Assembly: GCA_002269645.1 (NCBI GenBank) | Contig: NIVC01000420.1 | Location: 1-64,000, forward strand | Source of the DNA: Macrostomum lignano | Taxonomy: Eukaryota | DNA length: 64,000 bases | Direction of reading: 5' to 3' | Part shown: in pieces, positions 19,975 to 55,580 of the stretch | How the letters are laid out: every line of letters begins with the position of its first letter | How positions within the stretch are numbered: the stretch's first letter is position 1 | Program-made: the position numbers and the translations under genes | Notes under the pieces: model-generated | The model's database searches: none | Told to the model about the DNA's origin: nothing | Seen by the model: the letters and a program-made list of their open reading frames with translations, nothing else

Positions 19975-21825
<1,851 letters not shown>

Positions 21826-23476: not shown

Positions 23477-23482
23477 TATAAA
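23477..23482 (+). promoter_or_regulatory. Candidate TATA box of the ETS gene
   Basis: TATAAA about 95 bp upstream of ATG 23577. Confidence 0.35.
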
Positions 23483-23576
23483 TTTAGAGCCTTTTTTTAG
23501 AACTTAAATGCGACAATAGCCTTTGAGTTCATCCGAGTCTTACTGAGCTTCACTTCGCTTGTGTTTACACCCCATC

Positions 23577-29542: not shown

Positions 29543-32500
29543 ATGGACAATGCAAATTCCTTCCTAACAACTGGAGCTGTCACTGAGGGTGCGCTGATAG
29601 ATTCGCAAGATTCATTTGTGAAGTGTCCACTAAATACAAATTTTTCAAGTTCAGACATGGAAAAAAGCACTCTAGAGGCAGACCACCAAAGAGTTGATGA
29701 CTTAAAAAATCGTCAAGATAGCGAATGTTCTCAAAACTTGCCTGTTGAAATTCACCATGGCTCTCAAAGTGCTCAGGCTATTGGAGTTCATCAGAGTAAC
29801 ACATACTCAGAGTCAAGTGAAATGCATAACCAGGATCGTGCTAGTGCAGAAGATCAACCAGCGATTGATACTAATTTGAAGGGTCAGGAATCAACTGCAA
29901 ATGCACCAACTGAAAAATTGCAAGAATCCAATGAAGCATTCACTCAGCAAACTGCATTTAGCAATTCTATTGAAAATTCATCGTCTAATGGTGATTGTGA
30001 AGTAGATCAAGCTTCTGCTCCACTTGAGGATGATCAGCGTGATGCAGCACAGCAGTTGCGAGTAAATAAGTGTACTGATGCTCAGCCTGCTTCAAGTGCA
30101 AGTACTCAAGTTGCAGATGAAGGAGTATCACCACATCCGGTATCAGATGGTTTGTGCACTGTTGAACAATTAGCATCTGCAATCGGCGATACCACCGGAG
30201 AGCAGGCTGGAGTATTGGCTTCGAATAATGAAACTAAGCTGATGACGGATGACGAAGATGATGATAACGATCTTGGCTCAAATAAGAACAAATCGTTTAT
30301 GTCTTTTCACGATGAAAAAGTTTGTGAACCTGAAACTGCTAAGCCAGGCCCAGATTCAACTGAGTGTGCAGGGTCCAGCAGCAATGAAAAAGTTGGTGAA
30401 CATGAAACTGCTAAGCCAGGCCTAGATTCAACTGAGTGTGCAGGGTCCAGCAGCAATGAAAAAGTTGGTGAACCTGAAACTGCTAAGCCAGGCCTAGATT
30501 CAGCTGAGTGTGCAGGGTCCAGCAGCAATGAAAAAGTTGGTGAACCTGAAACTGCTAAGCCAGGCCCAGATTCAGCTGAGTGTGCAGGGTCAAGCAGCAA
30601 TGAAAAAGTTGGTGAACCTGAAACTGCTAAGTCAGGCCCAGATTCAGCTGAGTGTGCAGGGTCAAGCAGCAATGAAAAAGTTGGTGAACCTGAAACTGCT
30701 AAGCCAGGCCCAGATTCAGCTGAGTGTGCAGAGTCAAGCAGCAATGAAAAAGTTGGTGAACCTGAAACTGCTAAGCCAGGCCCAGATTCAGCTGAGTGTG
30801 CAGGGTCCAGCAGCAATGAAAAAGTTGGTGAACCTGAAACTGCTAAGCCAGGCCCAGATTCAACTGAGTGTGCAGGGTCCAGCAGCAATGAAAAAGTTGG
30901 TGAACATGAAACTGCTAAGCCAGGCCTAGATTCAGCTGAGTGTGCAGAGTCAAGCAGCAATGAAAAAGTTGGTGAACCTGAAACTGCTAAGCCAGGCCCA
31001 GATTCAACTGAGTGTGCAGGGTCCAGCAGCAATGAAAAAGTTGGTGAACCTGAAACTGCTAAGCCAGGCCTAGATTCAGCTGAGTGTGCAGAGTCAAGCA
31101 GCAATGAAAAAGTTGGTGAACCTGAAACTGCTAAGCCAGGCCCAGATTCAACTGAGTGTGCAGGGTCCAGCAGCAATGAAAAAGTTGGTGAACATGAAAC
31201 TGCTAAGCCAGGCCCAGATTCAGCTGAGTGTGCAGAGTCAAGCAGCAATGAAAAAGTTGGTGAACCTGAAACTGCTAAGCCAGGCCCAGATTCAGCTGAG
31301 TGTGCAGGGTCCAGCAGCAATGAAAAAGTTGGTGAACCTGAAACTGCTAAGCCAGGCCCAGATTCAACTGAGTGTGCAGGGTCCAGCAGCAATGAAAAAG
31401 TTGGTGAACATGAAACTGCTAAGCCAGGCCTAGATTCAGCTGAGTGTGCAGAGTCAAGCAGCAATGAAAAAGTTGGTGAACCTGAAACTGCTAAGCCAGG
31501 CCCAGATTCAACTGAGTGTGCAGGGTCCAGCAGCAATGAAAAAGTTGGTGAACATGAAACTGCTAAGCCAGGCCCAGATTCAGCTGAGTGTGCAGAGTCA
31601 AGCAGCAATGAAAAAGTTGGTGAACCTGAAACTGCTAAGCCAGGCCCAGATTCAGCTGAGTGTGCAGGGTCCAGCAGCAATGAAAAAGTTGGTGAACCTG
31701 AAACTGCTAAGCCAGGCCCAGATTCAGCTGAGTGTGCAGGGTCCAGCAGCAATGAAAAAGTTGGTGAACCTGAAACTGCTAAGCCAGGCCCAGATTCAGC
31801 TGAGTGTGCAGAGTCCAGCAGCAATGAAAAAGTTGGTGAACTTGAAACTGCTAAGCCAGGCCTGGGTTCAGCTGAATGTGCAGAGTCCAGCAGCAACGAA
31901 AAAGCTGAAGCTCCTCAGTCAAAAATGGCCCCCGGTGACAAGGAAAAACAGGCCGACGAAAATGCCAACGAGGATTTGGATCTAGGAGTCGGAGCTGACT
32001 TGGAATCGTTGAAAAAGGTGTCAACTGCCCCAGAGCACATGTTGGAACGAGCGTCTCATAATCACACCGTTATGTTTGACATCAGCAAGCTTAGCAATGT
32101 CAATTTTACCGAGCGCCCCCTTCCGCCCTACAGCAAATCTTGGCAACGACGCATGGATGCAGATGACTATGTTCGCCTAGCCTACCATACTAACAGATGG
32201 AGTGAAATTAGGAAAAACCTATTGTCATTATGCAGTGCTAATGTTACTTACTATCACTTGGAAGAAGTAATTATGCTCTGTGGCAGTTTAGATCGCGACA
32301 TTAATCAATTTGACGTGCTTCGGCATTTTTTTACCCAAGAAATGGAGCCAGCAGAAGCTGATCACTTGCTCAAAAATCTGTTGCCTAGAATTGTAAATCT
32401 TGCAGTCTCCCTGCCAGATCTAATCAAAGCGCCCATTCCTCTGCTGAAACACAGGAAAGTAATGAAGCTGAGTCTGTCCCAGCAGCAGATTGCTAGTCTT

Positions 32501-34380
32501 CTTGCGAATGCATTCTTCTGCACCTTTCCACAGCAAGGCGGACCTTATAGCAGGTTTCCAAGCATCAACTTTCACAGGTAAAAACTGCGAATTCTGAAGT
32601 ATTGATTGATTTCTACCTATACCCTGATCAATTAGCTCTTAGTTTGAGCTTTATTATACGTTTCTCGTAGTATGTTTTTTTTGAAAACTTGTTCCTTTTC
32701 AGTCTGTATTCGTCAGGAGGGCATCAGAGCCCGTGCGGCAGACGGTTGGAGAAGTTGCGCTGTATCTTTAACTACTTTAACAGAATCACTAAAAAAGGTA
32801 AAATGTTAAAGCAAATCAATTAGTAAATGAACCTGAAAATTGAAAGTAACACCTATTTAATGCATTGCAGAGCCATATGGTGTGGTAACCATTAGTCGCA
32901 GGCGTCTGAAACAAAACTTAGACTGGTGCTCTCGCGTTGAGCCTATTCCAAAACTACTTCACGTTAGCAGCATCGGCACCATTGAAGACACAGACGGTGA
33001 ATTTCTGGAGGCAGATTTCGCAAACAAGTACATCGGAGGCGGAGTTCTCGGTCACGGCTTTGTGCAGGAAGAGATTCGCTTCTCCATTTGTCCGGAACTC
33101 ATCGTGACCCGCTTGGTTGCCGAATGCATGGACGATCGGGAGGCTCTGCACGTGAAAGGATTCGAGAGGTTCAGCAATTACACCGGGTACGCCAATAGTT
33201 GCCAGTGGGACGGCAACCACCAAGACGCCAGGTCGATCGGACTGGACAGGCGCCGCCGGTCTCACTTGGTTGCTATGGACGCGTTGAAATTCAGCAACTG
33301 GCGAGAGCAGTTCTGCCGCAACAACATCAACAGGGAGTTGCACAAGGCTCTGGTGGCATTCGGTGACGTCCCAAGAAATCAGCGTTCTGCCATTGCCACT
33401 GGCAACTGGGGCTGTGGCGCCTTCAAAGGCGATGTGAGGCTGAAGTTTCTCATCCAGTTGATGGCCTGCGCCGTTGCTGGCCGAAGCATGGCTTACTTCA
33501 CTTTCGGTGACAAAACTCTTCAGCAGCGCCTGCTAAAAATGCACCGCTTTCTCACTGATAAAGAAGTTTGCGTTGGTGGCGTGTACAGCGCCGTGATTGC
33601 TTTCACCGAGCATCTGGACTCCAGTTGTCACGGTGGTTGGCAATATAATTCAGATTCTGCACCGGACTTGTTCGAATTTTTGCGTAATTATGTGCTTCAC
33701 GGGCCCACTGTTCCACCTCCAACTGAGCCTTCGATAAGCAAAAAAGATATTCGTAAAGCTTCGAAAAGAGCAAATGCCAACAAAAAGAAGCAAGAGCGTC
33801 AGCAGAATTCGTCGGATGTCCAAGAGTCGAAGCCAGAAAAATCGCAGCCGGAAGAGTCGAAGCCAAACAATGAACTGAGCGACCAGTCGGGGCAAGTACA
33901 GGTAGCAAACGCCGAATCAGAGAAGCAGGCAACAGCAGCAGATCTAAGCGATGCAAATTCTGGTGCCCAGGCGCAAGAGACACGCTCATCGGACGGTGAA
34001 TGGAAGCAGCAGAAAAGGAAGAATAAGCCCAACAAAAGCGGTCTCAAGTCGAGTCAAAAGTCGAAGTCTGCGACCGAGGAGCAACTGAGCAGCAAGATGA
34101 GCAATATGAATCTTTCGTCGACGACGCCACAAACCAACCGTAGGTTTGCATTTGCTGTCCGAATCCGATTTTTGCTGTCCGAACCCGATTTCATTGTCGA
34201 TTAAAACTTTTAATTTTTACAGGTGGAGAAAACAGACGTAAACGGTGCAGTGAGTCGAGCAGATCGGCCGGAGCCGGGCCGGGCGCCACCCCGCGGGGCT
34301 GCGCAGAGCAGCTTCCGGAGCCCAGTAAAAAAAAATTAAGGAAGGACAAGCGGAAAAAGCAAAACAAGAACAAAAAGTGA
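29543..34380 (+). CDS. PARG: Poly(ADP-ribose) glycohydrolase PARG-A with long repeat-rich N-terminus, 4 exons
   Basis: Exons 29543-32577, 32703-32797, 32871-34139, 34223-34380 (phases 2,1,1). SLLANAFFCTFP, DFANKYIGGGVLGHGFVQEEIRF, YTGYA, ATGNWGCGAFKGD; Lys-rich C-terminus. Confidence 0.95.
30310..31900 (+). repeat. 72-bp coding tandem repeat (22 copies of a 24-aa unit) in PARG-A exon 1
   Basis: Unit NEKVGEPETAKPGPDSAECAGSSS with few variant positions; frame preserved throughout. Confidence 0.97.
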
Positions 34381-36254: not shown

Positions 36255-36486
36255 CTTTAAACTTGTTTATTTTGCTTGTATTGAGAGTTTAGATTCTATA
36301 TATTCAGATTTTCTGCTTAACTGTCACATGCGAAAGAAATGTTCTTATTTTAACTTTCGCATCAAATATTAATGCTGCAACGATTCCGTTTCTTCATGCA
36401 GTAACCGAACTAAGGTTTTGCGATTTCTGTCAACTAAATATTTTGTTATTTCATCTTCCGCTGCAAAAAGCGGTTATTTTATCTCA

Positions 36487-39400
36487 ATGGGCAGCTCAAG
36501 CAGCCAGCTGAAGCGTTCCAGTTCGATGTCTTCACGTCACAAATCCCGAACGTCAGTTTCTAGAACGTCATCATTGAATAATCGGCAGATGTCACTCACG
36601 TCCGCCGCCAGACCTGCACAAGCAGCCGCGTCTCGTCGGCCGCCTCCAAACGCCTGTTGGTCCGGCGACGCTCTCGACTCTTTGCCGAAACAAAAAGTCG
36701 CAGATACGACACAGGAACTACGTCATGTGATCGAAGAATTTCGGTCTAACTGGACTCTATTCAACGCTAATATGCTAGAAGACCCCAATTCGGCTGGCAA
36801 ACTTCTTCTACGCTTTGTCAAGCCGTCAAGGAAGAATCTGGGGCCAAGGCTTTTAGATTTGCCTCATGCAGATGCCAAACGATGGAAGCACATAAAAGCC
36901 AATCTAAATAGACTTCGCTCGAATGTCACGTACAAGGATATTGAGCTTGCCATACACTCCTTCGGCAATCTAGACCACTTTCACCGACCAAAGTTGGATG
37001 TGCTGCATCATTTACTTAATAACCATTGGCCTCGGGAGAAAGTAGAAAGATTCTACCGGCATATTCTACCTGGAATGATACGTCTGGCACTCTCTCTGCC
37101 GGAACTTTTACCTGAGCAGATTCCGTTGTTAAGCCGCGGTCGACAAGCTGGTTGTCGTCCGTTGAGTTTTACTCAGCAGCAAGTTGCCTGTCTGCTCACT
37201 CACGCTTTTTTTTGCACTTTTGTGTTCCAAGGCGGTCAATATCCGAGTATCAATTTCAATGGGTATGATTTTTAAATTCTATTTTATGTGCTTTATTTTA
37301 CTATTTAATTATCAGTCTTCAATATCACCTATTAAATTTAAGAATATTTGTGTCTGGCGAATATCAAAGGCCGTGCACTCGTCGGATTGAGAAGCTGAAG
37401 TGCATCCTGCACTACATGGATCGCGTTGTTACTGACGGTATGCATTGATCCGCAGTATACCGTATAAAGGTCGTCTTATGCCACGGGTGTAATTACATGT
37501 AAAATAGCAGTTTTATAGAAGTTTATCGAGCAAAACGTAAACAAAACGGGTGTGTCGTTTTACCAGTTATCCCGATTAAAAACGACAATGAGCAGAGTAC
37601 AGGCATAGCAACAAAAACTGTCAATGGAAAGTGTCACCCCGTGTCCGTGTCTGATATTTGAAGGATGGAAGCTCTAAAGCTAAGCACTTGATATTTCATT
37701 GTTTTTGTTACAACTCCAATACTTAATATCGCATTTTCAGCACCGCTAGGAGTGATCACGATCAGCCGGAAATGCCTTCGACACAGAGTTAATTGGTCGG
37801 AAAGAACTGAGCCGATGCCTGACCGATTGCACGTTTCGTCCACTGGGACAATTGAAGACACAGATGGTGGCTTCTTGGAGGTTGATTTTGCAAACAAATT
37901 TCTTGGCGGAGGAGCTCTTGGACACGGATTGGTGCAGGAAGAGATCAGATTTATGATTAGTCCCGAGCTAATAGTGACTAGACTAGTTACTGAGTGCCTC
38001 GATGACAACGAAGCCCTACTAATTGAGGGGTTCGAGAGATTCAGCGACTACTCGGGCTATGCCGACTCTTTCAGGTGGATCAGCAACCACAAAGATTCAC
38101 GACCGGTTGGTGTAGACAGGCGGCGTTTATCGCAGCTGGTTGCCATGGATGCGGTGTGTTTCCGAAGCTGGATTGAGCAGTTCAGTGTCTATAACATTGA
38201 ACGAGAGCTTCACAAAGCTTTGGTCGCATTCGGCGATGTAAAAGACAATAAGAGCGGTGCGCAGCAACATGGCGCAGTTGCCACTGGCAACTGGGGTTGT
38301 GGCGCGTTCAAGGGTGATGTCAGGCTGAAATTTCTCATCCAGTTGATGGCATGCTCACTCGCCAGGCGGCCTGTGGCGTACTTCACATTCGGGGATCAGC
38401 CACTTCAGCAGCGCCTCGTGGAGATGCATCAGTTCCTCATAAATAATAATGTTACAGTGGGTGGCGTCTACAACGCTCTGCTTGCCTACGTAGCTGAACT
38501 AAATGCAGGGTCCCATCGTGCTCGACGCCAAGAAATGACTGCGCAGTCTGCGCCAGACTTATTTCGTTTTGTGCTCAATTATGTCCAATCGACGCGTGGT
38601 CCTTCTTTTTACGATCCAGCTGCGAATTCCAATGTTCCTTACCCGTCTACCAATGGGAAGCATCCAGAACGCATAGCGGAAACTGATCAAAGCGGTGAGC
38701 GACAGAATTGGCAACAGTCAACGGAGACATCAGGACAGCAGCGGACAGACCCCGGAGAGAATGTCAGCACACATGGTGCACCAGCTGGACAAAGCTTTGA
38801 CCATCAGAATCGGCAACAGCCAACGGAGATGTCACGACAGCAGCGGACGGACCCCGGAGCGAATGTCAGCACACATGGTGCACCAGCTGAACAAAGCTTT
38901 GGGCATCAGAATCGGCAACAGCCAACGGAGATGTCACGACAGCAGCGGACGGACCCCGGAGCGAATGTCAGCACACATGGTGCACCAGCTGAACAAAGCT
39001 TTGGGCATCAGAATCGGCAACAGCCAACGGAGATGGCAGGACAGCAGACTGACCCGAGAGCGAACGTCAGGACACAGGGTGCACCAGCTGGACAAAGCGT
39101 TAGACAACACAATCAGAAAAATAAGAAGGCTAGTAAGTCAAATGGGAAGAAGAGAGGCAATGCGGAGAGTCAATCTGAAGCATCTGTTGGCTGTTTCGGC
39201 AAATCTAAACAAACAAATGTTCGTCGTAGTGTTTCTCCAAAAAAACCTGGAAAAGGTAATTGCTTAGTTGATTTTTGCATTTATTTTTATGGATTAATTT
39301 AGTTATCAATGTGATCAATTCTCATTTTTAGCCATCTTTGCCTAAAATATAGATTTTAGCGCTCAGTTAAAGAAGTTTTCTGTACCATTCAAGAATCTCT

Positions 39401-39823
39401 TCTCTGTATTGGTTTTTTCCGTCTGTTACCATGTTGATATGGCAAAAACTGTTTTTGCATTAAACTAAAGTATTTTCACGCCCAGTTAAAGAAAAATTTG
39501 CTGCCTAAGACACAGAGTTTTTTACGAGCTAACTGCTGTAACAATTGGTCTGTTCAGAAAGATAAAAAAATAATGCTCTGCTTTGAGTGCTCAAGAACGC
39601 TAAAAACTATATTAACTCAAGTACAGGTGAACTCAAAGCTCATATATAAATCTAAACATAATCTTAACATTTATGTTTTTTAGATCGGCCGTCGTCGATT
39701 CGAGAATCGGGTAGATCAAATCCAAGCGATCGAAGATCAACAGAGGGGGAAAATGCCAATCTGGTTTCAAGTAATACGAATTCTGCAGCCAGGATAGCAA
39801 GGCGTATGGTTGAAGCAAATTAA
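36487..39823 (+). CDS. PARG: PARG-B1, 4 exons
   Basis: Exons 36487-37262, 37343-37437, 37741-39255, 39684-39823 (phases 2,1,1; exon 2 is 95 nt as in PARG-A). DFANKFLGGGALGHGLVQEEIRF, YSGYA, GNWGCGAFKGD; starts MGSSSS. Confidence 0.93.
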
Positions 39824-40891
39824 AATAGAACTCTGCTTATGTTACAGATGTGTAGTCTTCACTCGAGTTATTAAATGTTATTAATTCAAATTATTAAATG
39901 TGATTTTACGAGCTGAACACAAAGACCAACAGTAACTTTTTCAGGAACAAACGTGCAGAGTTGTTTGTTTTTTATTCAATTTGAAAGATGAATCGATTCT
40001 GTAAGTTCAACTTCTCTTGCCGTTTTTACGGAATTGTTTTTCAACTTTGCTCAACTTTTTGCTGTCTCAATATATCCAAGCTGTTTTATTGGGTCACGGA
40101 GTTTTAAGTACGTGATCTGGGAGTGGAAACTGACGCTTGTGAAGTTTAAATCCCAATCAATACACAATAGAGTACACACTATCTGACGATAAGACATATT
40201 CGGGGTGCTCCGGGCTCAGCTGTGTGGTCATGCTTGAGTACGAGTACCTTCTCGCTTGGCTGACTAGCACTCATACCGCCCTAAAAATAACTAAAAAACT
40301 TGTGATATCTGTGATCCTTTTGGCAGTCAGTTTCTATTCCAGAGTTTTGTTCCTTGGTACTTCGGGACTGCGTTGCACTGCCACACTTACTTGTCGCTTT
40401 CAGACAGACCGCGATTCTGCCTCGCTAGAATTTTACTGATGCCGCTGTTCAGATTCTGGATGCCCGGCATAAAGTATTCCAAATCGTTTATCCCAATGTG
40501 TCTTGTCTTTTGGAAAGCCTTACATTTTTTAACTTCTCAACCAATTGCTATTACAGATTTTTGTACAACATTTCCTTGCTTCAAGGACCAATTTTTGATA
40601 CGTTTTCTTATTACGAAGCTATACATGTGAAAAAAATCTTTGAAACATTCCTTTTGCTTTTTAAAAGTACTTTTGTGCTAATTTTTAAAAAATGTAATTA
40701 AAAATTAAACTAACTCTGCAGATTGTTTTTTGTTTAAATGTTTTTAAGTAATGCTTACTTCACACTATTAAAGTTCAAATTGAACTATTTTTAACTTTGA
40801 ATTTCTTAAAATGTGTTTTTGAATTTCAAATACGGGTTGAGTTTTTTCCCATTATCTTATCAAATAATTTTTTTAATAATTTTTTAATACT

Positions 40892-41235
40892 GTCTCACAT
40901 GATGTCTCACGTGATCACAGAGAATGTCTCGCATGATCACAGAGCATGTCTCGCATGATCACAGAGCATGTCTCGCATGATCACAGAGAATGTCTCACAT
41001 GATCACAGAGAATGTCTCACATGATCACAGAGAATGTCTCACATGATCACAGAGAATGTCTCACATGATCACAGAGAATGTCTCACATGATCACAGAGAA
41101 TGTCTCACATGATCACAGAGCATGTCTCACATGATCACAGAGAATGTCTCACATGATCATAGAGAATGTCTCACATGATCACAGAGAATGTCTCACATGA
41201 TCATAGAGAATGTCTCACATGATCACAGAGAATGT
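40892..41235. repeat. 22-bp minisatellite (ATGTCTCACATGATCACAGAGA) downstream of PARG-B1
   Basis: Tandem copies; paralogous array at 47412-47845. Confidence 0.95.
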
Positions 41236-41249
41236 ATCACGTGAACCCA

Positions 41250-41900
41250 TCCGCTCTTAGTTTGATCATTGCAGTATACTCTTGTTATACGTTTCTCGTA
41301 GTATTTTTTTGCAAAATTGTTTCTTTCCAGACTGTAATCGTCAGACAGACACTGCAGAGCCATGCAACAGATGGTTGGAGATGTGTTGAATGTTTAACTA
41401 TTTTAGCCATCGCTAAAAAGGTAAATTATTTGGATTTCAATGCAATTCAATTGTTTAGTAGTAAACCTGAAAATTGCAAGTAGATCGCATAACCTATGCA
41501 ATGCATTGCAGAGCCATATTTTGCATATGCTGTCCGATTTCACGGTCGATGAAAACATTTTTTACTTTTTACAGGTGCAAAAAGCAGTGAGTCAAGCAGA
41601 TCGGCCGGAGCTGGGCCGCGGGCGCCATCCCGGTGGGCTGCGCAGGGCAACTCCGTAGCCTGATCTAAAAAATAAAAAGGCCATCCTGAGAAAGCTGAAA
41701 TAGAAAAAAGAAGTGATTACCTATGTTCTCCGCATCTGGAATTATTGTTAACGTTTTCTTTAAAGTTTAGTAGAATTCTTCTTAAATCTGGTTTCAAGCC
41801 TAACGGCTTTTTAAATATAACAAAGTTTGAATAGCAAAAAACTTAAAATAACGAGGACATAGACGCGGTTAATCCATGGGTGTTTATAAAACTAAAAAAC
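41250..41900 (+). pseudogene. Relic of a PARG-A-type gene with the catalytic exon deleted
   Basis: Homologous in order to PARG-A intron 1, exon 2 (41331-41420, in-frame TAA), intron 2 and the first 8 nt of exon 3 (AGCCATAT), fused directly to intron 3 sequence, then the last exon (41575 onward) and 3' UTR. Confidence 0.85.
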
Positions 41901-42736
41901 GTATTTTAAGCATCTCAGAGGCTGTCTTTTTACAGTAGGTTACGTAATGCAACCTCTAAAACGAGGTTGTTGACGATGACATGATAATTTTGAGCCTTAC
42001 CTGGTATCTTTATTTTGCCACTGTTATTCAGTTTCTAAAGCTATTCATTGTATCAGTGACGGGATATGCTCGAATAATCCGATACGGATTTTCGATTGAA
42101 GATGTCTAACTTTTCAGATACGGTCATATGATGAATCTTGCGATACAAAATGCATTTGTCAAATTGAATTCCACGTTCGAATGAGGTTCTGTATAATTAG
42201 GTTATAAATGTACATTTTGCTCGCACGCTGGGATAGATTTTCCTAAGGTAGCGTGTCATTGATAAAAATATTTTCTTGCGGTTTTAAGTTATTTTTGTCG
42301 GTGTTTTCACTTAGGGATCTACAGTTGTAAATAGAAACAGTAATCCTATTTTTTGACTTGCGAATATCTCTAGAATAACCAGAGATATTAAATTAAATAA
42401 CCAGAGATATATAACGTCGATTTTAAATTTTAAATTTTAAAGTTTAGATTTTAAATTCTTTCGATGTTAAGAATTTATTATTATTGAACTTGTTGATTTT
42501 ACTTGCATTGAGCGCTTAAATCTATATTTAGACTTTCTGTTCAATTGTCTAAAACAATTAACTGCACATGCCCAAGAAATCTCATACTCGTATTTCAACT
42601 TTTGCATCACATTTTAATGCTGCAACGATTCTGTTTCTTTCAGCAGTAAAACCTCGGAACTGAGGCTTAGCGATTCTGTAAGCAAAATATTTTGGTTATT
42701 TCATCTTCAGCTGCAAAAAGCGGTTATTTTATCTCA

Positions 42737-45700
42737 ATGGGCAGCTCAAGCAGCCAGCTGAAGCGTTCCAGTTCGATGTCTTCACGTCACAAATCCCGAA
42801 CGTCAGTTTCTAGAGAGTTATCATTGAATAATCGGCAGATGTCACTCACGTCCGCTGCAAGACCTGCACAAGCAGCCGCGTCTCGTCGGCCGCCTCCAAA
42901 CGCCTGTTGGTCCGGCGACGCTCTCGACTCTTTGCCGAAACAAAAAGTCGCAGCTACGACACCGGAATTACGTAATGTGATCGAAGAATTTCGGTCTAAC
43001 TGGACTCTATTCAACGCTAATATGCTAGAAGACCCCAATTCGGCTGGCAAACTTCTCCGGCCGCGCCTTGTCAAGAAGATGGAGCCAAGGCTTTTGGATT
43101 TGCCTCATGCAGATGCCAGACGATGGAAGCACGTAAAAGCCAATCTAAATAAACTTCGCTCGAATGTCACGTCCGAGGATATTGAGCTTGCCATATATTC
43201 CTTTGGCAATCTAGACCACTTTCACCGACCAAAGTTGGATGTGCTGCATCATTTACTTAATAACCATTGGCCTCGGGAGAAAGTAGAAAGATTCTACCGG
43301 CATATTCTACCTAGAATGATACGTCTGGCACTCTCTCTGCCGGAAATTTTACCTGAGCAGATTCCGTTGTTAAGCCGCGGTCGACAAGCTGGTTGTCGTC
43401 CGTTGAGCTTCACTCAGCAGCAAGTTGCCAGTCTGCTCACTCACGCTTTTTTTTGCACTTTCGTGTACCAAGGCGGTCAATATCCAACTATCAATTTCAA
43501 TGGGTATGATTTTTAATTTCTTTTTTTATGTGATTAATTTTACTATTTAATTATCAAGTCTTTAATATCACCTATTAAATTTAAGAATATTTGTGTCTGG
43601 CGAATATCAAAGGCCGTGCACTCGTCGGATTGAGAAGCTGAAGTGCATCCTGCACTACATGGATCGCGTTGTTACTGACGGTATGCATTGATCCGCAGTA
43701 TACCGTATAAAGGTCGTCTTATGCCATGGGTTTAGTTGACGAATGTACGTGTAAAATAGCTGTTTAACAGTAGGAATACCAAGCCATTTTTCCGCCCGTC
43801 GAACTACCAAGAGGGGGGGGGAATCCCCCCCTGACAATTTTTTTGCTGCGCAGGAACGGAGCAACGCAGGCACACGAAATTCAAGAACACGGGCTGACTT
43901 TTTGTTGTGCACCTTCTCAAACAAGAATCAAGTCGCCAGTCCTCCGGACCGTCGAAATATTCGACGATTCTGCCAGAAAGTCTGATTTTTCCCATAAGCG
44001 CTAGTGTATTCAGTACACCCCTGTGCGCCAATTAGCACTGCGCCTCAGTGCAGCCTTGCCAAGTCTCCAAATTTCATCAGCACGTCGACCACATGTGTCT
44101 GCATCAGCTCTGACTTCGTTGGTCACTAGCCTTCACCCAGGTGGAGCTTCTGGACCCTCAACAGCTGTGGCACCAGGTGACTATGGACACCCTGATGCGG
44201 ATTTCTCTAGTTTCGCCGATCAAGCCTCGACAGTGGGCAAGAATCAACCGTCAGACATTCTCAGCTAGTCTCTCAAGCATTCCGTCATCATCCCGACGCC
44301 GTCGGCAAAAAATTGTCAGGGGGGGGAATTTCCCCCCCCCCTCTTGGTAGTTCTACTGTTAATGAGAAATGGGGGTGTCGTTGTTACTAGCTATTTAAAT
44401 TGTTAACAAATACAATAAGCTAAGACGCAAAAGTACAGACAAGAAGAAAAATTGTCGGTAGGGAAGTGCCGCGCGAGTGTGTCTATCTAGAACCTCTATA
44501 GGAGGATAGGACCTACATGTATAAAGCTACGAGTGTAAGCACGATATTTCATTGTTTTTTTTACAACTCCAATACTTAATATCGCATTTTCAGCACCGCT
44601 AGGAGTGATCACAATCAGCCGGAAATGCCTTCGACACGGAGTTAATTGGTCGGAGAGAACTGAGCCGATGCCTGACCGATTGCACGTTTCGTCCACTGGG
44701 ACAATTGAAGACACAGGTGGTGGCTTCTTGGAGGTTGATTTTGCAAACAAATTTCTTGGCGGAGGAGCTCTTGGACACGGATTGATGCAGCAGGAGATCA
44801 GATTTATGATTAGTCCTGAGCTAATAGTGACTAGACTAGTTACCGAGTGCCTCGATGACAATGAAGCCCTACTAATTGAGGGGTTCGAGAGATTCAGCGA
44901 CTACTCGGGCTATGCAGACTCTTTCAGGTGGATCGGCGATCACAAAGATTCACGACCGGTTGGTTTGGACAGACGGCGTTCATCGCACCTGGTTGCCATG
45001 GATGCGGTGTGTTTCCGAAGCTGGATTGAGCAGTTCAGTGTCTATAACATTGAACGAGAGCTCCACAAAGCTTTGGTAGCGTTCGGCGATGTAAAAGACA
45101 ATAAGAGTGGTGCGCAGCAACATGGCGCAGTTGCCACTGGCAACTGGGGTTGTGGCGCGTTCAAGGGTGATGTCAGGCTGAAATTTCTCATCCAGTTGAT
45201 GGCATGCTCACTCGCCAGGCGGCCTGTGGCGTACTTCACATTCGGGGATCAGCCACTTCAAAAGCGCCTCGTGGAGATGCATCAGTTCCTCATAAATAAT
45301 AATGTTACAGTGGGTGGCGTCTACAACGCTCTGATTGCCTACGCAGATGAACTAACACTAACTGTAAGGTCCCATCATACTCGACGCCAAGAAATGACTG
45401 CCCAGTCTGCGCCAGACTTGTTTCAATTTGTGATCTATTACGTCCAATCAACGCGCGGTCCTTCTTTTTACGATCCAGCTGCGAATTCCAATGTTCCAAT
45501 GCTGTCGACCAATGGGAAGCATCCAGAACGCATAGCGAAAACTGGTCAAAGTGGTGAGCGACAGAATTGGCAAAAGTCAGCAAAGATGTCAGGACAGTGG
45601 ATACCCAGAGCAAGTGTCAGCACACATGATGCACCAGCTGGACAAAGCGGTGAGCATCAGAATCGGCAACAGCCAACGGAGATTTCAGGACAGCAGACTG

Positions 45701-46475
45701 ACCCGAGAGCGAACGTCAAGACACATGGTGCACCAGCTGGACAAAGCGTTAGACAACACAATCAGAAAAATAAGAAGGCTAGTAAGTCAAATGGGAAGAA
45801 GAGAGGCAATGCAGAGAGTCAATCTGAAGCATCTGTTGGCTGTTTCGGCAAATCTAAACAAACAAATGTTCGTCGTAGTGTTTCTCCAAAAAAACCTGGA
45901 AAAGGTAATTGCTTAGTTGATTTTTGCATTTATTTTTATGGATTAATTTAGTTATCAATGTGATCAATTCTCATTTTTAGCCATCTTTGCCTAAAATATA
46001 GGTTGTAGCACTCAGTTAAAGAAATTTTCTGTTCCATTTACGAATCTCTGTATTGGTTTTTTCCGTCTGTTACCATGCTGATATGGCGAAAAAAGTTTTC
46101 AACTAAAGAATTTTCACGCCCAGTTGAAGAAAAATTTACTGCCTAAGACAGATTTAACTGCTGTAACAATTGGTCTGTTCAGAAAGATTAAAAAATAATG
46201 CTCTGCTTTGAGTGCTCAAGAACGCTAAAAACTATATTAACTCAAGTACAGGTGAACTCAAAGCTCATATATAAATCTAAACATAATCTTAACATTTATG
46301 TTTTTTAGATCGGCCGTCGTCGATTCGAGAATCGGGTAGATCAAATCCAAGCGATCGAAGATCAACAGAGGGGGAAAATGCCAATCTGGTTTCAAGTAAT
46401 ACGAATTCTGCAGCCAGGAGAAGAAGGCGTAAGGTTGAAGCAAATAAGAACTCTGCTTATGTTACAGATGTGTAG
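42737..46475 (+). CDS. PARG: PARG-B2, recent paralogue of B1 with QQE in place of QEE, 4 exons
   Basis: Exons 42737-43503, 43586-43680, 44594-45904, 46309-46475; near-identical to B1; signature reads GGGALGHGLMQQEIRF. Confidence 0.92.
43768..44358. mobile_element. Non-autonomous TIR element flanked by TTAA, in PARG-B2 intron 2
   Basis: TTAA|CAGTAG...CTACTG|TTAA; long subterminal inverted repeats (GAACTACCAAGAGGGGG...CCCCCTGACAATTTTT); missing from the homologous B1 intron (303 vs 913 bp). Confidence 0.85.
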
Positions 46476-47411: not shown

Positions 47412-47845
47412 TGATGTCTCACATGATCACAAAATATGTCTCACATGATCACAAAATATGTCTCGCATGATCACAAAGTATGTCTCACATGATCACAAAG
47501 GATGTCTCACATGATCACAAAAGATGTCTCACATGATCACAAAATATGTCTCACATGATCACAAAATATGTCTCGCATGATACAAAAGATGTCTCACATG
47601 ATCACAAAATATGTCTCACATGATCACAAAGTATGTCTCACATGATCACAAAAGATTCTCACATGATTACAAAAGATGTCTCACATGATCACAAAGTATG
47701 TCCCACAATGTCACAAAAGATGTCTCACATGATCACAAAAGATGTCTCACATGATCACAAAAGATGTCTCACATGATCACAAAAGATGTCTCACATGATC
47801 ACAAAAGATGTCTCACATGACCACAGAGAATTTCTCACATGATCT
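47412..47845. repeat. 22-bp minisatellite (ATGTCTCACATGATCACAAAAG) downstream of PARG-B2
   Basis: Same family as 40892-41235 with different diagnostic bases. Confidence 0.95.
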
Positions 47846-48069
47846 GTCTGACATGAACCCAGACGATGTTTCATAGATCCCTTAGGACGTTTCACGTGTA
47901 CCCAGAGAATTTCTTTTATGATTCAAAAGAATGTCTCTCTTAGAGCTCTTTGGCCTGTTCAAATTGTATTGCAAGTGTATTTGTTCAGAAATTTGAGGTT
48001 TCTTTACCCCATCTTTCAGTTCAGCCTAAAGGCAATCTACCTCAGTCTCCAGGGCTCTCGCAGACAAAG

Positions 48070-48627
48070 ATGACGGGCAAACGGCAGCAGCCCGACCCGT
48101 TTGACTATCCGTCTTCTCTAGCATTCGGCATTATTGTTGGCTACGCGTTGGCTCTACTATTCGCGGTAATCATTGCTGCAATTCGACGCAAAAACTGCTG
48201 CAAAATTGTCGGTCCTAGCAGCGACAACTACCACTTGGTCCGCTTGGAGAGAACCGAGGTGGAACCGCTAACCTCGACGCCCGGTCGTGAAGTAGAGAGC
48301 AACACTGACTCACCAACCAGAGTTGCTAACATCGCTGTCGCCCAGACAACAGAGCCTACGGTCGCGAATGCAGATATTGTCACGGTAGAACTCGCACTCA
48401 CTGGGTCAGAAACGGAGCGAGAAACTACAGCGGCAGCTGAGCCTGACGAAGTTGAAACAGAAGATGAAGTTAAAAGGCTGCGTCGCCTGACGAAGCAGCT
48501 GGACGCCATTTTGGACGAGTTCAACGCTGATGAGACAGACGACCGAATAGTGCTCGAACTCGCGCAGGAGATCGTGTCTACAGCTATACGTCAAGCTGTT
48601 GAAATTTGTCACGCCGAAAGCAATTAG
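48070..48627 (+). CDS. Orphan single-pass membrane protein with C-terminal AKAP-like amphipathic helix (upstream exon possible)
   Basis: TM segment LAFGIIVGYALALLFAVIIAAI followed by RRKNCC, an acidic tail, and IVLELAQEIVSTAIRQAVE near the C-terminus. Confidence 0.7.
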   Translation: MTGKRQQPDPFDYPSSLAFGIIVGYALALLFAVIIAAIRRKNCCKIVGPSSDNYHLVRLERTEVEPLTSTPGREVESNTDSPTRVANIAVAQTTEPTVANADIVTVELALTGSETERETTAAAEPDEVETEDEVKRLRRLTKQLDAILDEFNADETDDRIVLELAQEIVSTAIRQAVEICHAESN

Positions 48628-48847
48628 TTTTTTTTCTACGCAAGTACAATGGGAAGTGGTGCTCAATTTTGGATTTTTTTGTTTTGATTTTGACTTCTGT
48701 GTCAAAGCGACTGCACGGCGCTATGTACTGCTAGTCTCTTTAACAGTTGCAGAGCCTGGCCATCTTTCTGTACTTTTTTATGCCAGAAATAGTGTTTTAT
48801 TAATTTTGTTATTAATGTTACAAAGGACTCGCATTCAAAGTGTCGAA

Positions 48848-49405
48848 TGACTGTCAGGGCCAATTGACTGTCGGTGACAATTGTCTGTCAGTGCCAACTG
48901 ACTGTCAGTGCCAATTGACCGTCAGTGCCAATTGACTGTCAGTGCCAATTGACTGTCAGTGCCAATAGACTCAGTGACATTTGACCGTCAGTGCCAATTG
49001 ACTGTCGTTGACAATTGTCTGTCAGTGCCAATTAACTGCCAGTGCCAATTGACTGTCGGTGACAATTGACTGTCAGTGCCAATTGACTGTCAGTGTCAAT
49101 TAACTGTCAGTGCCAATTGACTGTCAGTGCCAATTGACTCAGTGACATTTGTCTGTCAGTGCCAATAGACTCAGTGACATTTGACCGTCAGTGCCAATTA
49201 ACTGTCAGTGCCAATTGACTGTCAGTGCCAATTGACTGCCAGTGCCAATTTACTGTCAGTGCCAATTAACTGTCAGTGCCAATTGACTGTCAGTGAAATT
49301 TGACTGTCAGTGCCAATTGACTGCCAGTGCCAATTTACTGTCAGTGCCAATTAACTGTCAGTGCCAATTGACTGTCAGTGAAATTTGACTGTCAGTGCCA
49401 TTTTA
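48848..49405. repeat. 17-bp minisatellite (TTGACTGTCAGTGCCAA)
   Basis: Tandem copies visible. Confidence 0.95.
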
Positions 49406-50007
49406 CTTCTAGTGACAATTGTTAACGCCATAATTTGCTAACCATAAGAGCATCAGCTAGAAGTTCCGATTCTTCGAGATTTGTTTTAAACGGAAGCTTT
49501 GTTCATCATGCAACATTATACATTCGTCTTCTTATTATTGTGCACAGAATCTTTTTTGTGTCTTCGTACTGACTGCATGTTTATTTTCAGTAATAATTTC
49601 TAATAGCTTGAAATGCCATCTTTTTGGGTATTAAACTTTTGCAAAAAAAATAAATAAAATCAGCTGATTGTTGTCCTATTTATTGTACAACATTTGTGTG
49701 CCTTGTTAGCTTGTTTTGTTATATTTGCTTTGTGCTTTTAAAAACTAAATTTGTGCTTGATGCTACTTTTGTCAGTAGCGTGACGCGATTGCTCTATAGA
49801 TTTTTTGACGCAGGTTTTTTTTGACATGCGCGCTGGCGGCTGTCGCACCATTTTAATAAAAACTGCTTTGCCTGGCTTCCTGTGTAGACAGAGGTTTATT
49901 GCACAATCCATTATTGGCTCAAGATTTACGAGTATTGATCATTGATGATTTTGTTAAGTTTATTGAATTCTTTAATATAATGACACCATCTGCCGCAAGC
50001 GCAAAGA

Positions 50008-50581
50008 CCATCTGACTAAAATCCCATAAGACCATCTGACTAAAATCCCATAGGACCATCTGACTAAAATCCCATAGGACCATCTGACTAAAATCCCATA
50101 GGACCATCTGACTAAAATCCCATAAGACCATCTGACTAAAATCCCATAGGACCATCTGACTAAAATCCCATAGGACCATCTGACTAAACTCCCATAGGAT
50201 TATCGAACTAAAATCCCATAGGACCATCTGACTAAAATCCCATAGGACCATCTGACTAAAATCCCATAGGACCATCTGACTAAAATCCCATAGGACCATC
50301 TGACTAAAATCCCATAGGACCATCTGACTAAACTCCCATAGGACCATCTGACTAAAATCCCATAGGACCATCTGACTAAAATCCCAAAGGACCATCGAAC
50401 TAAAATCCCATAGGACCATCGGACTAAAATCCCATAGGACCATCTGACTAAAATCCCATAGGACCATCTGACTAAAATCCCATAGGACCATCTGACTAAA
50501 ATCCCATATGACCATCTGACTAAAATCCCATAGGACCATCGGACTAAAATCCTATATGACCATCTGACTAAAATCCCATAG
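50008..50581. repeat. 24-bp minisatellite (ACCATCTGACTAAAATCCCATAGG)
   Basis: Tandem copies visible. Confidence 0.96.
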
Positions 50582-51289
50582 GGCCGTGCGATCAGATTTA
50601 AGTCCATTTTAATATATTTCGACATTAAAATGCTAAGAAAACTCTAAAACATTTAAAAATACTACTTTAAGTAAGATACAGTATATTTTACCACCTTCAA
50701 TTTTTCTGCCCAATTTCTAAAAAATGAGTTCCTAAATGTTCCCAAAAATGTTGAAAAATTGACGAAAAACTTTTTACCATCTTTAAAGAAGTGATAAAAT
50801 TCTACATCCAGTTCCGCTACTTTTTGCTGAGTTCCCTCCGAAGATCACGGTTCACTCGTTTTGCCAGAATGAAGAAACTCCCAAAAGAAAAAGTCTTTAG
50901 GAATAAAATTTCCAGGATTTTTTTGTCTATCTGGGAGCCCGAGGGAAAGTTCAGAAATTTGACAGGTGCGAAGGCATTGAGAAGAATTGAATTAGGGGGG
51001 GGGGCGTGACGGCCCAGGGCTGCCGTATCCACAGCAGCCGGTTTTGCATGCATTTGTAATTAGCCAAGCCAGCGACAAAATTTTGGCTAGCAAAGTCAAA
51101 CAGGCTGGAGGGAGCTGAGGGCAGTGCAAATACTTGATGCCTCAAAATGCGCCTTGAGTACTACTCAAATGCTCGTATGGATGAATACAGTCAATACGGA
51201 ACCGATTCAACTTGGGTTCTGGTGTGGTTAAGTGTTAAATTTTCTTTTTATTCAATTTCTTTTCGGGAGGGCTGCTGGAACCCTGAAGC

Positions 51290-51530
51290 CTTCGGCGACA
51301 TGGTCTCACAACCAGGGCTGAGGCAGTTCTGGCCATTCAGCTGCCTCCTGAGCACATGCAAGCCCGCCAATACTGTACACACGCTCACACAGGGTGTACA
51401 GCGGACCTGGCTTTCTGATCGTCAGGGATGTACACTCTCTGTGCCCTGGGGGTTGGGCCTCACTGGTATGAATCGCATGGCAGACCTCAGCCACTTTTCA
51501 TGCAAATTAAACTGGGATTAACATAGACTC
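51290..51530 (-). mobile_element. Partial copy of the tRNA-derived SINE
   Basis: CACACGCTCACACAGGGTGTACAGCGG...GATGTACACTCTCTGTGCC homologous to the 61664-62025 element. Confidence 0.75.
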
Positions 51531-51626
51531 GAAATTCTCGAATATTAGGATGAGTAAAGATTGGATTAGTAGAAGGGATATTGCTAGTTGAGGTAGGGAG
51601 TTTTCAAGGGAAGATATGGGTCGGGG

Positions 51627-51988
51627 CAGGCGCGTCGCCTCCGGGGGGGGGGACACAGGGGGGACATGTCCCCCAGTAAAAACTATGGGGGGGCATGCCA
51701 ATGCTTTGTCCCCCCACCCCACCTTGTGACCCGTTGTGGTAATCAATAATTTTTCTTCTGGGCGCCAAAATGAGTGCCTGCGGCGCCAAAATGAGTTCCT
51801 GTGGCGCTAAAATGAGTGCCTGTGGCACCAAAAGTAGTGCCTGCGGCACCAAAATGAGTGCCTGCGGCGCCAAAATGAGCTCTGACAACGCGATTCTCAA
51901 AATAATGGAGATGTAGAAATTTAGTCATGTACATGTAGAATTCTTGGCTTTGTCCCCACCCACCATAAAATCCATGGCGACGCCCCTG
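51627..51988. mobile_element. hAT-like MITE with internal 21-bp repeats
   Basis: Ends CAGGCGCGTCGCC / GGCGACGCCCCTG; 8-bp flanks GGTCGGGG / TGTCGGGT (6 of 8); internal AAAATGAGTGCCTGCGGCGCC repeats. Confidence 0.55.
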
Positions 51989-52779
51989 TGTCGGGTGACA
52001 AAAGAAATTGGCAGATACTTCACAACCGACAGGGACGGGAAACTACAAAAGTTTGAGGCCCATCAATCAATAAATTAGTCCTCGAAAAGCATTACTTGGA
52101 TAGGTTTTTACCACAGACAAAAACTCACTGATTTAAAGGGAATACACTAAGAAGATAGCAGCTCATCGGCCTCCAAATTTTGTTGTTTCACTATGGGAGT
52201 TCTATCCCCTTTCTCATCCAACGGAGGAGTTCCACTCGTATGCATTAAAGCTAGCATGGCCATTATGACACTTTGGGCCGCCGCTCTCCCAGATCTGGTG
52301 GCGAATGACGCAACCTGTTGCGAGAGACGCCTTTACTGAGTTATAATCTATGGCCCAGAGTTGGTTCACAGGGCCCTGGCAGATTGGGAGATGGCCAAGT
52401 GAGGTCAGACAAAGTCAAGGGGGGCAGCTGGGGCTGGTCGGTTCCATCCACGCCCCCCGTGTCCTACGGCCAGGATTGATCATTGTAAAAGTTCTATGCT
52501 CATAAAATTCAATGATAGCTGGCTGCTCCAGTATAACAGTTGACTTTGACCAGCATCAGTTTAGATTGCGCGTTGAGGCCGCGATGGTGGTGGGTGGCGC
52601 AAGCGGTTGGTTTTCAATTTTAATAATCACTTTCAAATTTTGCAGATTTATAAACGATTTTGCTGGCAGCTGTGCATAGCAACTAATGTAGATTCGAATT
52701 TATTTAAGCAATTTTGGATTCAATTTTACCAATCCTTGAGATTTGATTTTTAAAGGAGCGATTGAGTTTCAGATTGTCA

Positions 52780-53746
52780 CTCTTGTGCCAGTCACGCCAA
52801 TTAAACTGCGCGCTTGCGCCAGTCGCTCCTATTAAACTGCGCGCTTATGCTAGTGGCGCCTATTAAACTGCGCGCTTGTGCCAGTCACGCCAATTAAACT
52901 GCGCGCTTGTGCCAGTCGCGCCTATTAAACTGCGCACTTGTGCCAGTCGCTCCTATTAAACTGCGCGCTTATGCTAGTCGCGCCTATTAAACTGCGCGCT
53001 TGTGCCAGTCGCTCCTATTAAACTGCGCACTTGTGCCAGTCGCTCCTATTAAACTGCGCGCTTATGCTAGTCGCGCCTATTAAACTGCGCGCTTGTGCCA
53101 GTCGCTCCTATTAAACTGCGCGCCTGTACCAGTCGCGCCTATTAAACGCCGCGCTTGTGCCAGTCGCGCCAATTAAACTGCGCGCTTGTACCAGTCGCGC
53201 CTATTAAACTCCGCGCTTGTGCCAGTCGCGCCTATTAAACTGAGCACTTGTGCCAGTCGCGCCTATTAAACTCCGCGCTTGTGCCAGTCGCGCCTATTAA
53301 ACTGCGCACTTGTGCCAGTCGCTCCTATTAAACTGCGCGCTTATGCTAGTCACGCCTATTAAACTGCGCGCTTGTGCCAGTCGCGCTTATTAAACTGCGC
53401 GCTTATGCTAGTCACGCCTATTAAACTGCGCGCTTGTGCCAGTCGCGCTTATTAAACTGCGCGCTTATGCTAGTCGCGCTTATTAAACTGCGCGCTTGTG
53501 CCAGTCGCGCCAATTGAACTGCGCGCTTGTGCCAGTCGCTCCTATTAAACTGCGCGCTGATGCTAGTCGTGCCTATTAAACTGCGCGCTTGTGCCAGTCG
53601 CGCCCATTAACCTGCGCGCTTGCGCCAGTCGCTCCTATAAAACTGCGCGCTTATGCTAGTTGCGCTTATTAAACTGCGTGCTTGTGCCAGTCGCGCCAAT
53701 TGAACTGCGCGCTTGTGCCAGTCACGCCAATTAAACTGCGCGCTTA
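52780..53746. repeat. 31-bp CpG-rich minisatellite (TTAAACTGCGCGCTTGTGCCAGTCGCGCCTA)
   Basis: Tandem copies visible. Confidence 0.96.
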
Positions 53747-54639
53747 ATCAGGCATCCGTTTCAGTGGTTGATTCTCAGTGTGCTTCTTGAGAATAATAAT
53801 CGCTAATGGGGATGCAATTAAGGTCGGTACCTCATGCTTTTTAAAATGCTAAAAATTTCTATTTACAAAATTTCTGTCGAGTGCTTGCTTGGATGATTAA
53901 AAAATCGACCTTCAGGCTACCTGGCACAAAGCGGCTCAAAATTAAAGACGATTAATCACACAATACTACAACAATTGTCTTCAATAGATGCTATCGACAA
54001 ACTCGGCCTGCAGTTGCTCCTTGAGTAACGCAGCAAATCGTTCTGAGTTTTGTTTGCCAACAACGGGCATTTTTTATGAATTTTTTAATCCCCTGTCCTC
54101 CGGCCGGTGTTTAAACTGCGGCTCCGTCAATTTCCCATTTAATTCCGGCGCTCGAAATGAATTGAAGGAGGGAATGGGAGAGGCAGACAGGAAAGGGTTG
54201 AGCGAATATGAATTTCTGTGGCGGAAGGGGCGCTGAAAAAGCCGGCAAACAGAATTTAATGGCGGCAGGCAGAGCCAATGAATAGACTCGCTATAGAGTG
54301 GAGCACGCCGTGTTTGTCCAAGCCTGATGAGGCTGGGAAGCTGACTTCAAGATTTCGCTTTTTAACTCGAATTGCCCCGAAGTGGATTTATAGAAAGCAA
54401 AAAAACTCATTATTCTGTTCGGGACACGAAAGCCGTCGCTCTATTTACGTGTATTGCTATATTTTTTGTCATGCCGAGCCAAGGGGGTCAGTGAGCCATC
54501 CCGGTCCTTTCTTCAGGGAAATTTTATTTTTGTTAGTGGGACTAAATGTTTCTGAATTCGGTTTTTCTAATTTAATTGCAATTTTTCTGTTTCTGATTAA
54601 TTGCATGTAGCAGGAACTGTTTTGGACCCTCCAGAACAA

Positions 54640-55580
54640 ATTGGCGCCCCAGGAACTGACTTGGTGCCTCAAAACCTGACATGGCGCCCCAGGAACTGAC
54701 TTGGTGCCTCAAAACCTGACATGGCGCCTCAAGAACTGACATGGCGCCTCAAGAACTGACATGGCGCCTCAAGAACTGACATGGCGCCTCAAGAACTGAC
54801 ATGGCGCCTCAAGAACTGACATGGCGTCTCAAGAACTGACATGGCGCCTCAAGAACTGACATGGCGCCTCAAGAATTGACATGGCGCCTCAAGAACTGAC
54901 ATGGCGCCTCAAGAACTGACATGGCGCCTTAGGGACTGACTTGGCGCCTTAGGGACTGACATAGCGCCTCAGGAACTAACATGGCGCCTCAAGAACTGAC
55001 TTGGTTGGCGCTTCAAGAACTGACTTGGCACCTCAAGAACTGACTTGGTTGGCGCTTCAAGAACTGACTTGGCGCCTCAGGAACTGACATGGCGCTTCAA
55101 TAATTAACATGGCGTCTCAGGAATTGACATGGCGCCTCAGGGACTGACATGGCGCCTCAGAAACTGACATGGTGCCTCAAGAACTGACTTGGCGCTTCAA
55201 GAACTGACATGGCGCCTCAGGAACTGACTTGGCGCCTTAGGGACTGACTTGGCGCCTCAGGAACTGACATGGCGCCCTAGGGACTGACTTGGCGCCTCAG
55301 GAACTAACATGGCGCCTCAAGAACTGACATGGCGCCTCAAAAACTGACATGGTGCCTTAGGGACTGACATGGCGCCTCAGGAACTAACATGGCGCCTCAA
55401 GAACTGACTTGGCGCCTCAGGAACTGACATGGCGCCCTAGGGACTGACTTGGCGCCTCAGGAACTAACATGGCGCCTCAAGAACTGACATGGCGCCTCAA
55501 AAACTGACATGGTGCCTTAGGGACTGACATAGCGCCTTAGGGACTGACTTGGCGCCTTAGGGACTGACTTGGCGCCTTGG
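54640..55580. repeat. 20-bp minisatellite (ATGGCGCCTCAAGAACTGAC) upstream of the Unc-4 gene
   Basis: Tandem copies visible. Confidence 0.96.

Follow-up and report, generated by a model that had tools for sequence, protein, structure and literature searches.

A natural Glu-to-Gln change in the catalytic loop of a Macrostomum lignano PARG paralog marks a candidate attenuated hydrolase

INTRODUCTION

As a rule, poly(ADP-ribose) (PAR) is erased by PARG, a single, essential enzyme that is highly conserved. We examined a 64-kb window from the flatworm Macrostomum lignano (the whole stretch of DNA analyzed, 64,000 nucleotides, positions 1 to 64,000 of contig NIVC01000420.1) in which three PARG genes, here called A, B1, and B2, stand in tandem, head to tail, on the plus strand. 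The deposited contig (assembly GCA_002269645.1, Mlig_3_7) matched the window with 100% identity over positions 26400 to 56475, and the closest database proteins were those of M. lignano. B2 has a glutamine in place of the first of the two glutamates in the QEE triplet of the PARG signature. Its neighbor B1, on the same strand and 2.9 kb upstream, retains QEE, and this arrangement recurs at a second locus.

The role of the QEE triplet is known from several enzymes. In human PARG, E756 is the catalytic acid/base, and E755 forms a hydrogen bond with the 2''-OH (PMC3519477). Human E755A is inactive (PMC3519477); it is dead on PAR even at 4 uM, while weak decapping of ADP-ribosylated RNA (ADPr-RNA) remains, with efficiency down by orders of magnitude (PMC11920425). 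Mouse E748N is completely dead and its loop is distorted. The change found in B2 corresponds to mouse E748Q (human E755Q), a mutant that "still retained residual PARG activities" and whose catalytic loop is shaped like that of the wild type in the crystal (PMC3897571). In bovine E756N (human E755N), activity was abolished and inhibitor binding largely kept, and T. curvata E114A lost both binding and activity (PMC3519477). A natural case comes from Arabidopsis: PAR hydrolase activity could not be detected for PARG2, whose signature is degenerate, but the gene is expressed and linked to an immune phenotype; GGL variants like that of PARG2 occur in other species (PMC4287526).

RESULTS

The Glu-to-Gln variant in B2 is real. 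On the plus strand, positions 44755 to 44802 translate to LGGGALGHGLMQQEIR, and the B2 signature loop (44758 to 44805) reads GGGALGHGLMQQEIRF, with residues M352 and Q354. The QQE of B2 aligns with human Q754-E755-E756, so the residue replaced is the first Glu (human E755). The signature of B2 is GGG-X7-QQE, whereas B1 and A carry GGG-X6-8-QEE with both glutamates. The initial annotation of this DNA had reported QQE in B2 against QEE in B1, along with a nearby Val changed to Met, and rereading the codons bore out both differences and their coordinates. B2 has ATG CAG CAG GAG, with the Met codon ATG at 44785 to 44787 and the variant Gln codon CAG at 44791 to 44793. B1 has GTG CAG GAA GAG, with GAA at 37938 to 37940, in a signature (37905 to 37952, plus strand) that reads GGGALGHGLVQEEIRF. 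Because GTG CAG GAA GAG is also present in gene A and in every QEE-type copy at two other loci, we infer that GAA is ancestral. The derived substitutions in B2 number three within 9 nt (G>A, G>C, and A>G).

The second copy of the cluster is split between contigs NIVC01001254.1 (A' and B1', the latter with QEE) and NIVC01001255.1 (B2', corresponding to protein P0001). Over 10.6 kb, the B2' locus and the window share 97.3% identity, and the codons ATG CAG CAG are exactly alike in both. Sequencing error, which had been flagged for checking, was ruled out as the source of QQE, since the same three bases occur in this independently assembled contig, which differs elsewhere.

The B2 variant stands out within the PARG family. 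Our family sample consisted of 120 close homologs and 144 representatives from a library of 1.84 billion proteins clustered at 50% identity, and it contained ~274 other PARG catalytic domains. The signature triplet was QEE in 272 of these and QED in one (P0230); the first Glu was present in all of them, the QED variant changing the second. The residue before the triplet was V in 269 domains and L in 5, and M was found solely in the B2 type. A search for QQE in other species, as proposed in the initial annotation, came back empty: none of the ~274 domains outside the M. lignano B2 type had it. Likewise, neither these domains nor the literature that we searched contained a natural paralog in which the first Glu is replaced. 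Judged from these sequences, the B2 variant is exceptional for the PARG family. An apparent second QQE, in P0230, was an artefact of the regular expression and is located in the C-terminal region. P0230 itself reads VDFAAS...GGG...LVQEDVLF, that is, QED with the Asn of DFAN lost, and the first domain of P0005 from Cirrhinus molitorella has GGE in place of GGG. These two sequences suggest that degeneration among PARG paralogs may be commoner than published work implies.

Outside the altered loop, B2 has the features of a PARG. It matched the Pfam families PF05028 (PARG_cat_C; E = 1.6e-76) and PF20811 (PARG_cat_N; E = 7.6e-30), and it matched human PARG structures with E = 8e-94. In a HMMER alignment to 4A0D, the equivalents of human T725/I726/E727, D737, N740, GGG, Y792, Y795, N869, the diphosphate-loop GAF, and F902 were all kept. 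The fourth residue of GAFG is Lys in B2; Arg stands there in many insect PARGs. The best Protein Data Bank (PDB) match to the B2 motif segment (GLMQQEIRF) was 4N9Y, the structure of mouse E748Q, which carries GLVQQEIRF. We modeled the fold with AlphaFold2 on P0001, which is 98% identical to B2 and likewise has QQE. The model had a predicted template modeling (TM) score of 0.79, with the predicted local distance difference test (pLDDT) mostly >85 in the core, and its top Foldseek matches were human and mouse PARG (E ~1e-47; target-normalized TM, 0.86 to 0.90). We are therefore confident in predicting a PARG fold for B2. Such a prediction supports the fold; it cannot tell Glu from Gln functionally.

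B2 is also intact as a gene. It encodes 779 amino acids in four exons with an uninterrupted open reading frame (ORF) and GT/AG at all three introns, and the broken frame or splice sites of a pseudogene are absent. The initial annotation had likewise described the ORF and splice sites as intact. The gene bodies of B1 and B2 are 92 to 93% identical, rising to ~95% in the catalytic domain. Ratios of nonsynonymous to synonymous substitution rates (dN/dS) were calculated by the Nei-Gojobori method. For the catalytic domain, dN/dS was 0.27 between B1 and B2 (18 nonsynonymous and 19 synonymous changes; Fisher P = 1.7e-4) and 0.34 between the two QQE copies (8 nonsynonymous and 7 synonymous; two-sided Fisher P = 0.056, one-sided binomial P = 0.038). 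Among the 115 alignment columns with conservation of at least 80% in PARGs, the B2 lineage had changed at only two, through V352M and E354Q in the catalytic loop; the neutral expectation was ~8 to 10 changes (lineage distance, 0.03 to 0.04; P = 0.002 to 0.015). B1 also had two changes at these columns (G to D and G to S).

How these values are to be read depends on the history of the pair. Exons, intron 1, and intron 3 differ by 0 to 6% between B1 and B2, whereas the difference is 12 to 22% in the flanks and in intron 2 where it can be aligned. The coding dS (0.08) was consequently discarded as a measure of neutral divergence: the duplication would be older than dS implies, as the gene body was probably homogenized while the flanks diverged. 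In other words, the gene bodies probably look younger than their surroundings owing to gene conversion, and conversion in homogenized gene bodies can mimic purifying selection. Taken together, the sequences point to moderate constraint on B2.

Evidence for transcription comes from gene models. The Mlig_3_7 models were built by genome-guided RNA-seq (transcriptome sequencing) assembly (StringTie, TACO, de novo transcripts, and TBONE). The exon 1-2-3 junctions of the P0001 model are those that we derived independently for B2, and the splice site set used for B2 exon 1 also recovers this RNA-guided GenBank model at the second locus. These models indirectly support the view that QQE-type genes are transcribed. 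At 90% clustering, the B2-type proteins comprised two GenBank conceptual translations and no transcriptome-derived member. Mlig gene identifiers were not found in the examined supplements of Wudarski et al., where we sought expression tables, and our literature search found no paper on Macrostomum PARG. The protein of B2' ends early, at GQWIPEQVQHT followed by a stop, where a 30-nt stretch of the tail in the NIVC01001255.1 copy (4964 to 5100) contains three 1-nt indels; the frameshift may be real or may be a long-read assembly error.

On the contig itself, the GenBank model P0121 (PAA83400.1, BOX15_Mlig006438g2, "partial") is a chimera that lies within 36400 to 46475 and joins exons 1 and 2 of B1 to exons 3 and 4 of B2. 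Since this model fuses the two genes, neither B1 nor B2 is annotated alone, and the catalytic exon of B1 and exons 1 and 2 of B2 are unannotated. P0121 also lacks four amino acids (TLTV) that the genome encodes at ADELTLTVRSHH. Elsewhere, several canonical PARG models of M. lignano (Mlig023323 and related; the P0014 cluster) are fused to or beside "cysteine synthase 1" in UniProt, at 1,337 to 1,386 amino acids, which is probably another merged-gene annotation problem.

The PARG genes, exons, and gene relic mapped in the window are all on the plus strand. Exon 1 of B2 (42737 to 43503) runs from the ATG of MGSSSS to the donor GG/GTATGA and codes for the N-terminal region together with the helical domain PARG_cat_N. 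Exon 2 (43586 to 43680; 95 nt) is 100% identical to exon 2 of B1 (37343 to 37437). Intron 2 (43681 to 44593) is ~600 nt longer than its B1 counterpart owing to an inserted repeat. This element (43731 to 44536) is without counterpart in B1 and has a palindromic stretch of the G8AATTTC9 type inside; part of it (43896 to 44154) has a 92.7% copy 13 kb downstream, at 57101 to 57360. Exon 3 (44594 to 45904) encodes the macrodomain-type catalytic core (PARG_cat_C) and a Gln/Pro-rich repeat tail. Exon 4 (46309 to 46475) begins with DRPSSIRESG, joined to KKPGK of exon 3, and ends in AYVTDV before the stop.

B1 (36487 to 39823) encodes 841 amino acids in an uninterrupted ORF with exons at 36487 to 37262, 37343 to 37437, 37741 to 39255, and 39684 to 39823 and GT...AG introns. 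Its C-terminal tail (38703 to 39098) contains 3.9 copies of a 102-nt Gln/Pro-rich coding repeat; this repeat is contracted in B2 (45562 to 45763), which accounts for most of the difference in length between the two proteins. Gene A (29543 to ~34380), the third and more divergent paralog, has QEE at 33035 to 33082. Its N-terminal exon contains 22 copies of a 72-nt (24-amino-acid) coding repeat (30312 to 31904) with the unit SSSNEKVGEPETAKPGPDSAECAG. The A proteins of the other two loci, at 1,119 and 1,123 amino acids, have far fewer repeat units than the window's gene A (~1,400 to 1,490 amino acids). Between B1 and B2 lies a decayed A-like relic (41282 to 42373) in which an exon-2-like stretch has in-frame stops (~41360 to 41437) and A-type 3'-flank homology remains at 74 to 79% identity. 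Judged from this relic, A and B may at first have been duplicated together as one unit.

A 22-bp tandem array lies downstream of B1 (40902 to 41244), with a sister array downstream of B2 (47413 to 47844); the second-locus contigs end within the array. More broadly, long satellite arrays of high identity, with periods of 4 to 51 bp, are unusually abundant in the window (10578 to 26576 and 47413 to 55577), for example at 10578 to 11275, 15972 to 16548, 19401 to 19932, 48848 to 49421, 50006 to 50582, 52782 to 53745, and 54642 to 55577.

DISCUSSION

We give roughly even odds (a probability of about 0.5) to the view that B2 is expressed and structurally intact but strongly attenuated as a PARG, that it still binds PAR, and that some constraint still acts on its conserved core. 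The initial annotation had proposed a weak or dead hydrolase that still binds. By analogy with mouse E748Q and bovine E756N, a weak hydrolase that still binds ADP-ribose or PAR ends is well supported; it is a reasonable expectation given the residual activity of E748Q and the intact fold and other contact residues of B2. The same analogy does not support calling B2 dead, which exceeds the evidence. Mechanistically, B2 is without the carboxylate that positions the substrate and relays to the catalytic Glu (B2 E355, human E756), and its hydrolysis of the ribose-ribose bond would accordingly fall to a residual level. As a very slow PARG, B2 would then hold PAR far longer than its QEE twin B1 needs for cutting. 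Between a still-used attenuated paralog, whether slow hydrolase or PAR binder, and a gene in free decay, the former appears more likely, since the rest of the conserved core is unchanged since the duplication.

Several observations weigh against an attenuated B2 maintained in this way. V352M, the adjacent extra change, has no counterpart in mouse E748Q. The selection signal within the QQE lineage is based on 15 substitutions only, and outside the catalytic domain dN/dS is 0.5 to 1.3 for the N-terminal region and tail (~0.7 to 1.3 for the B2 tail). The tail frameshift of B2' weakens the maintenance signal, and a large repeat (~600 nt) has been inserted into intron 2 of B2. Gene conversion from B1 is evident in exon 2 and its flanks, which are 100% identical, and in mosaics among the other copies. 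The QQE codon was read in genomic sequence; its link to RNA runs through gene models, and the deposited proteins are conceptual translations. Finally, the third copy of the cluster (NIVC01003597.1:48551-72753) consists of A'' and just one B gene, of the QEE type; directly after it comes the gene that in the window stands next after B2. With one of three cluster copies having a QEE-type B only, B2 is at least not indispensable per haploid set.

That single B gene (15881 to 19324 of NIVC01003597.1:48551-72753) is a mosaic of B1-like and B2-like diagnostic codons with 23 private changes and a B2-like 3' flank. We dropped it as an outgroup for polarizing changes, as its B1-like and B2-like states are spatially clustered in the manner of a recombinant or converted gene. 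The mosaic codons argue for exchange between the B1 and B2 paralogs, and they suggest that unequal crossing-over or gene conversion between the twins lies behind the third-locus gene.

The strongest competing explanation, which we regard as a serious possibility although short of even odds, is that B2 is a tolerated hypomorph heading toward a pseudogene. Here the E-to-Q change would have crippled a redundant young duplicate and become fixed by drift, with no role as a reader or protector, and the ORF would be intact because little time has passed and B1 has occasionally converted it. The genomic setting suits such a history. M. lignano is a recent neopolyploid whose DV1 assembly contains 180 to 312 Mb of duplicated sequence, and redundancy here is extreme, with three A-B cluster copies and several canonical PARG genes in the assembly. 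The QQE gene was lost from, or was never at, the third locus. The signatures of gene conversion, the frameshift in the tail of B2', and N-terminal and tail dN/dS values of 0.66 to 1.26 are in line with decay, and private changes of 3 nonsynonymous to 8 synonymous in the third-locus B gene, against 8 to 7 in the QQE lineage, hint at some relaxation. However, catalytic-domain dN/dS is well under 1, conserved columns are unchanged outside the loop, and the ORF and splice sites of the catalytic domain are intact in two diverged copies, B2' included. The frameshift of B2', as three 1-nt indels in 30 nt, is typical of long-read assembly error.

A more ambitious version of the attenuated-enzyme interpretation is that B2 is a selected, natural "slow PARG," a PAR-end binder made by remodeling two residues of the loop (V352M and E354Q) and kept beside its fast twin to shield or prolong PAR signals. 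We consider this doubtful. The initial annotation had gone in the same direction, casting B2 as a PAR reader, protector, or dominant-negative, and our results did not establish such a role: constraint is moderate and confounded by conversion, one of three cluster copies is without the QQE gene, and the genome is that of a redundant neopolyploid. With moderate constraint in so redundant a genome, a retained PAR-binding role and a tolerated hypomorph are not separable, and from sequence alone slow binding by B2 may be useful or merely tolerated.

It is improbable that B2 is instead still efficient or shifted in substrate, with V352M compensating for E354Q or with activity directed mainly at linkages for which the carboxylate matters less, for example at ADP-ribosylated RNA ends or at terminal units. 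Both changes are in the same loop and arose together as three substitutions in 9 nt, mouse E748Q is not fully dead, and human E755A retains weak ADPr-RNA decapping though dead on PAR. Yet that decapping is reduced in efficiency by orders of magnitude, and the first Glu is kept in all ~274 other domains. To our knowledge, no mutation that compensates for loss of the first Glu has been described. Lastly, a sequencing, assembly, or collapse artefact at the QQE codon is hardly credible: the locus is repetitive and assembled from long reads, and the GenBank model on the contig is a B1/B2 chimera, but the changes are three base substitutions rather than indels and are the same in two contigs that differ at ~2.7% of other positions.

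What B2 means depends on which of these accounts holds. If it is a slow PARG under selection, it would be the first example from nature of an animal PARG pseudoenzyme set apart by loss of the first Glu of the catalytic loop, and it would point to signal shielding in a flatworm with a lineage-specific PARG expansion. If B2 has been retained for function, its two changes at conserved positions would make it a minimal natural experiment in converting an eraser into a long-lived binder and would give access to PAR dynamics in a flatworm that regenerates and is genetically tractable. If B2 is only a tolerated hypomorph, it would be a case of ordinary early duplicate decay in a neopolyploid, and the practical value would be an annotation fix for the fused B1/B2 model.

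The concept of an impaired PARG paralog beside an active twin is already known from Arabidopsis PARG2, and the exact substitution in B2 has already been characterized in the laboratory. With canonical PARGs (human, mouse, and Drosophila), B2 shares domain architecture, fold, and ADP-ribose contacts except the first Glu; it differs in QQE, in a short N-terminal region, and in a Gln/Pro-rich repeat tail specific to its lineage. The A/B clade to which it belongs is Macrostomum-specific and 45% identical to the canonical M. lignano PARG P0014. The Tetrahymena PARG structure 4L2H, of a catalytically disabled enzyme that served to trap PAR, resembles B2 in having a Glu-to-Gln change in the catalytic pair. 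It shows that such a PARG can keep a PAR fragment bound in the active site, but that mutant, E256Q, is engineered and affects the other, second Glu. Mouse PARG E748Q (PDB 4N9Y; Wang et al. 2014, PMC3897571) has the same substitution at the same position in the same fold. Unlike B2, it is a laboratory mutant of a single-copy enzyme without the Val-to-Met change, and the catalytic domains of the two are ~45 to 50% identical. Arabidopsis thaliana PARG2 (At2g31865; Feng et al. 2015, PMC4287526), like B2, is a natural PARG paralog that adjoins a twin with an intact signature (PARG1) and has an altered signature residue. Its lesion, however, is GGL-X7-QEE, at the third Gly rather than the first Glu. 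Moreover, Arabidopsis PARG1 and PARG2 are ~52% identical and restoring the motif did not rescue PARG2, whereas B1 and B2 are ~95% identical in the catalytic domain and the B2 lineage has changed at conserved columns in the loop only.

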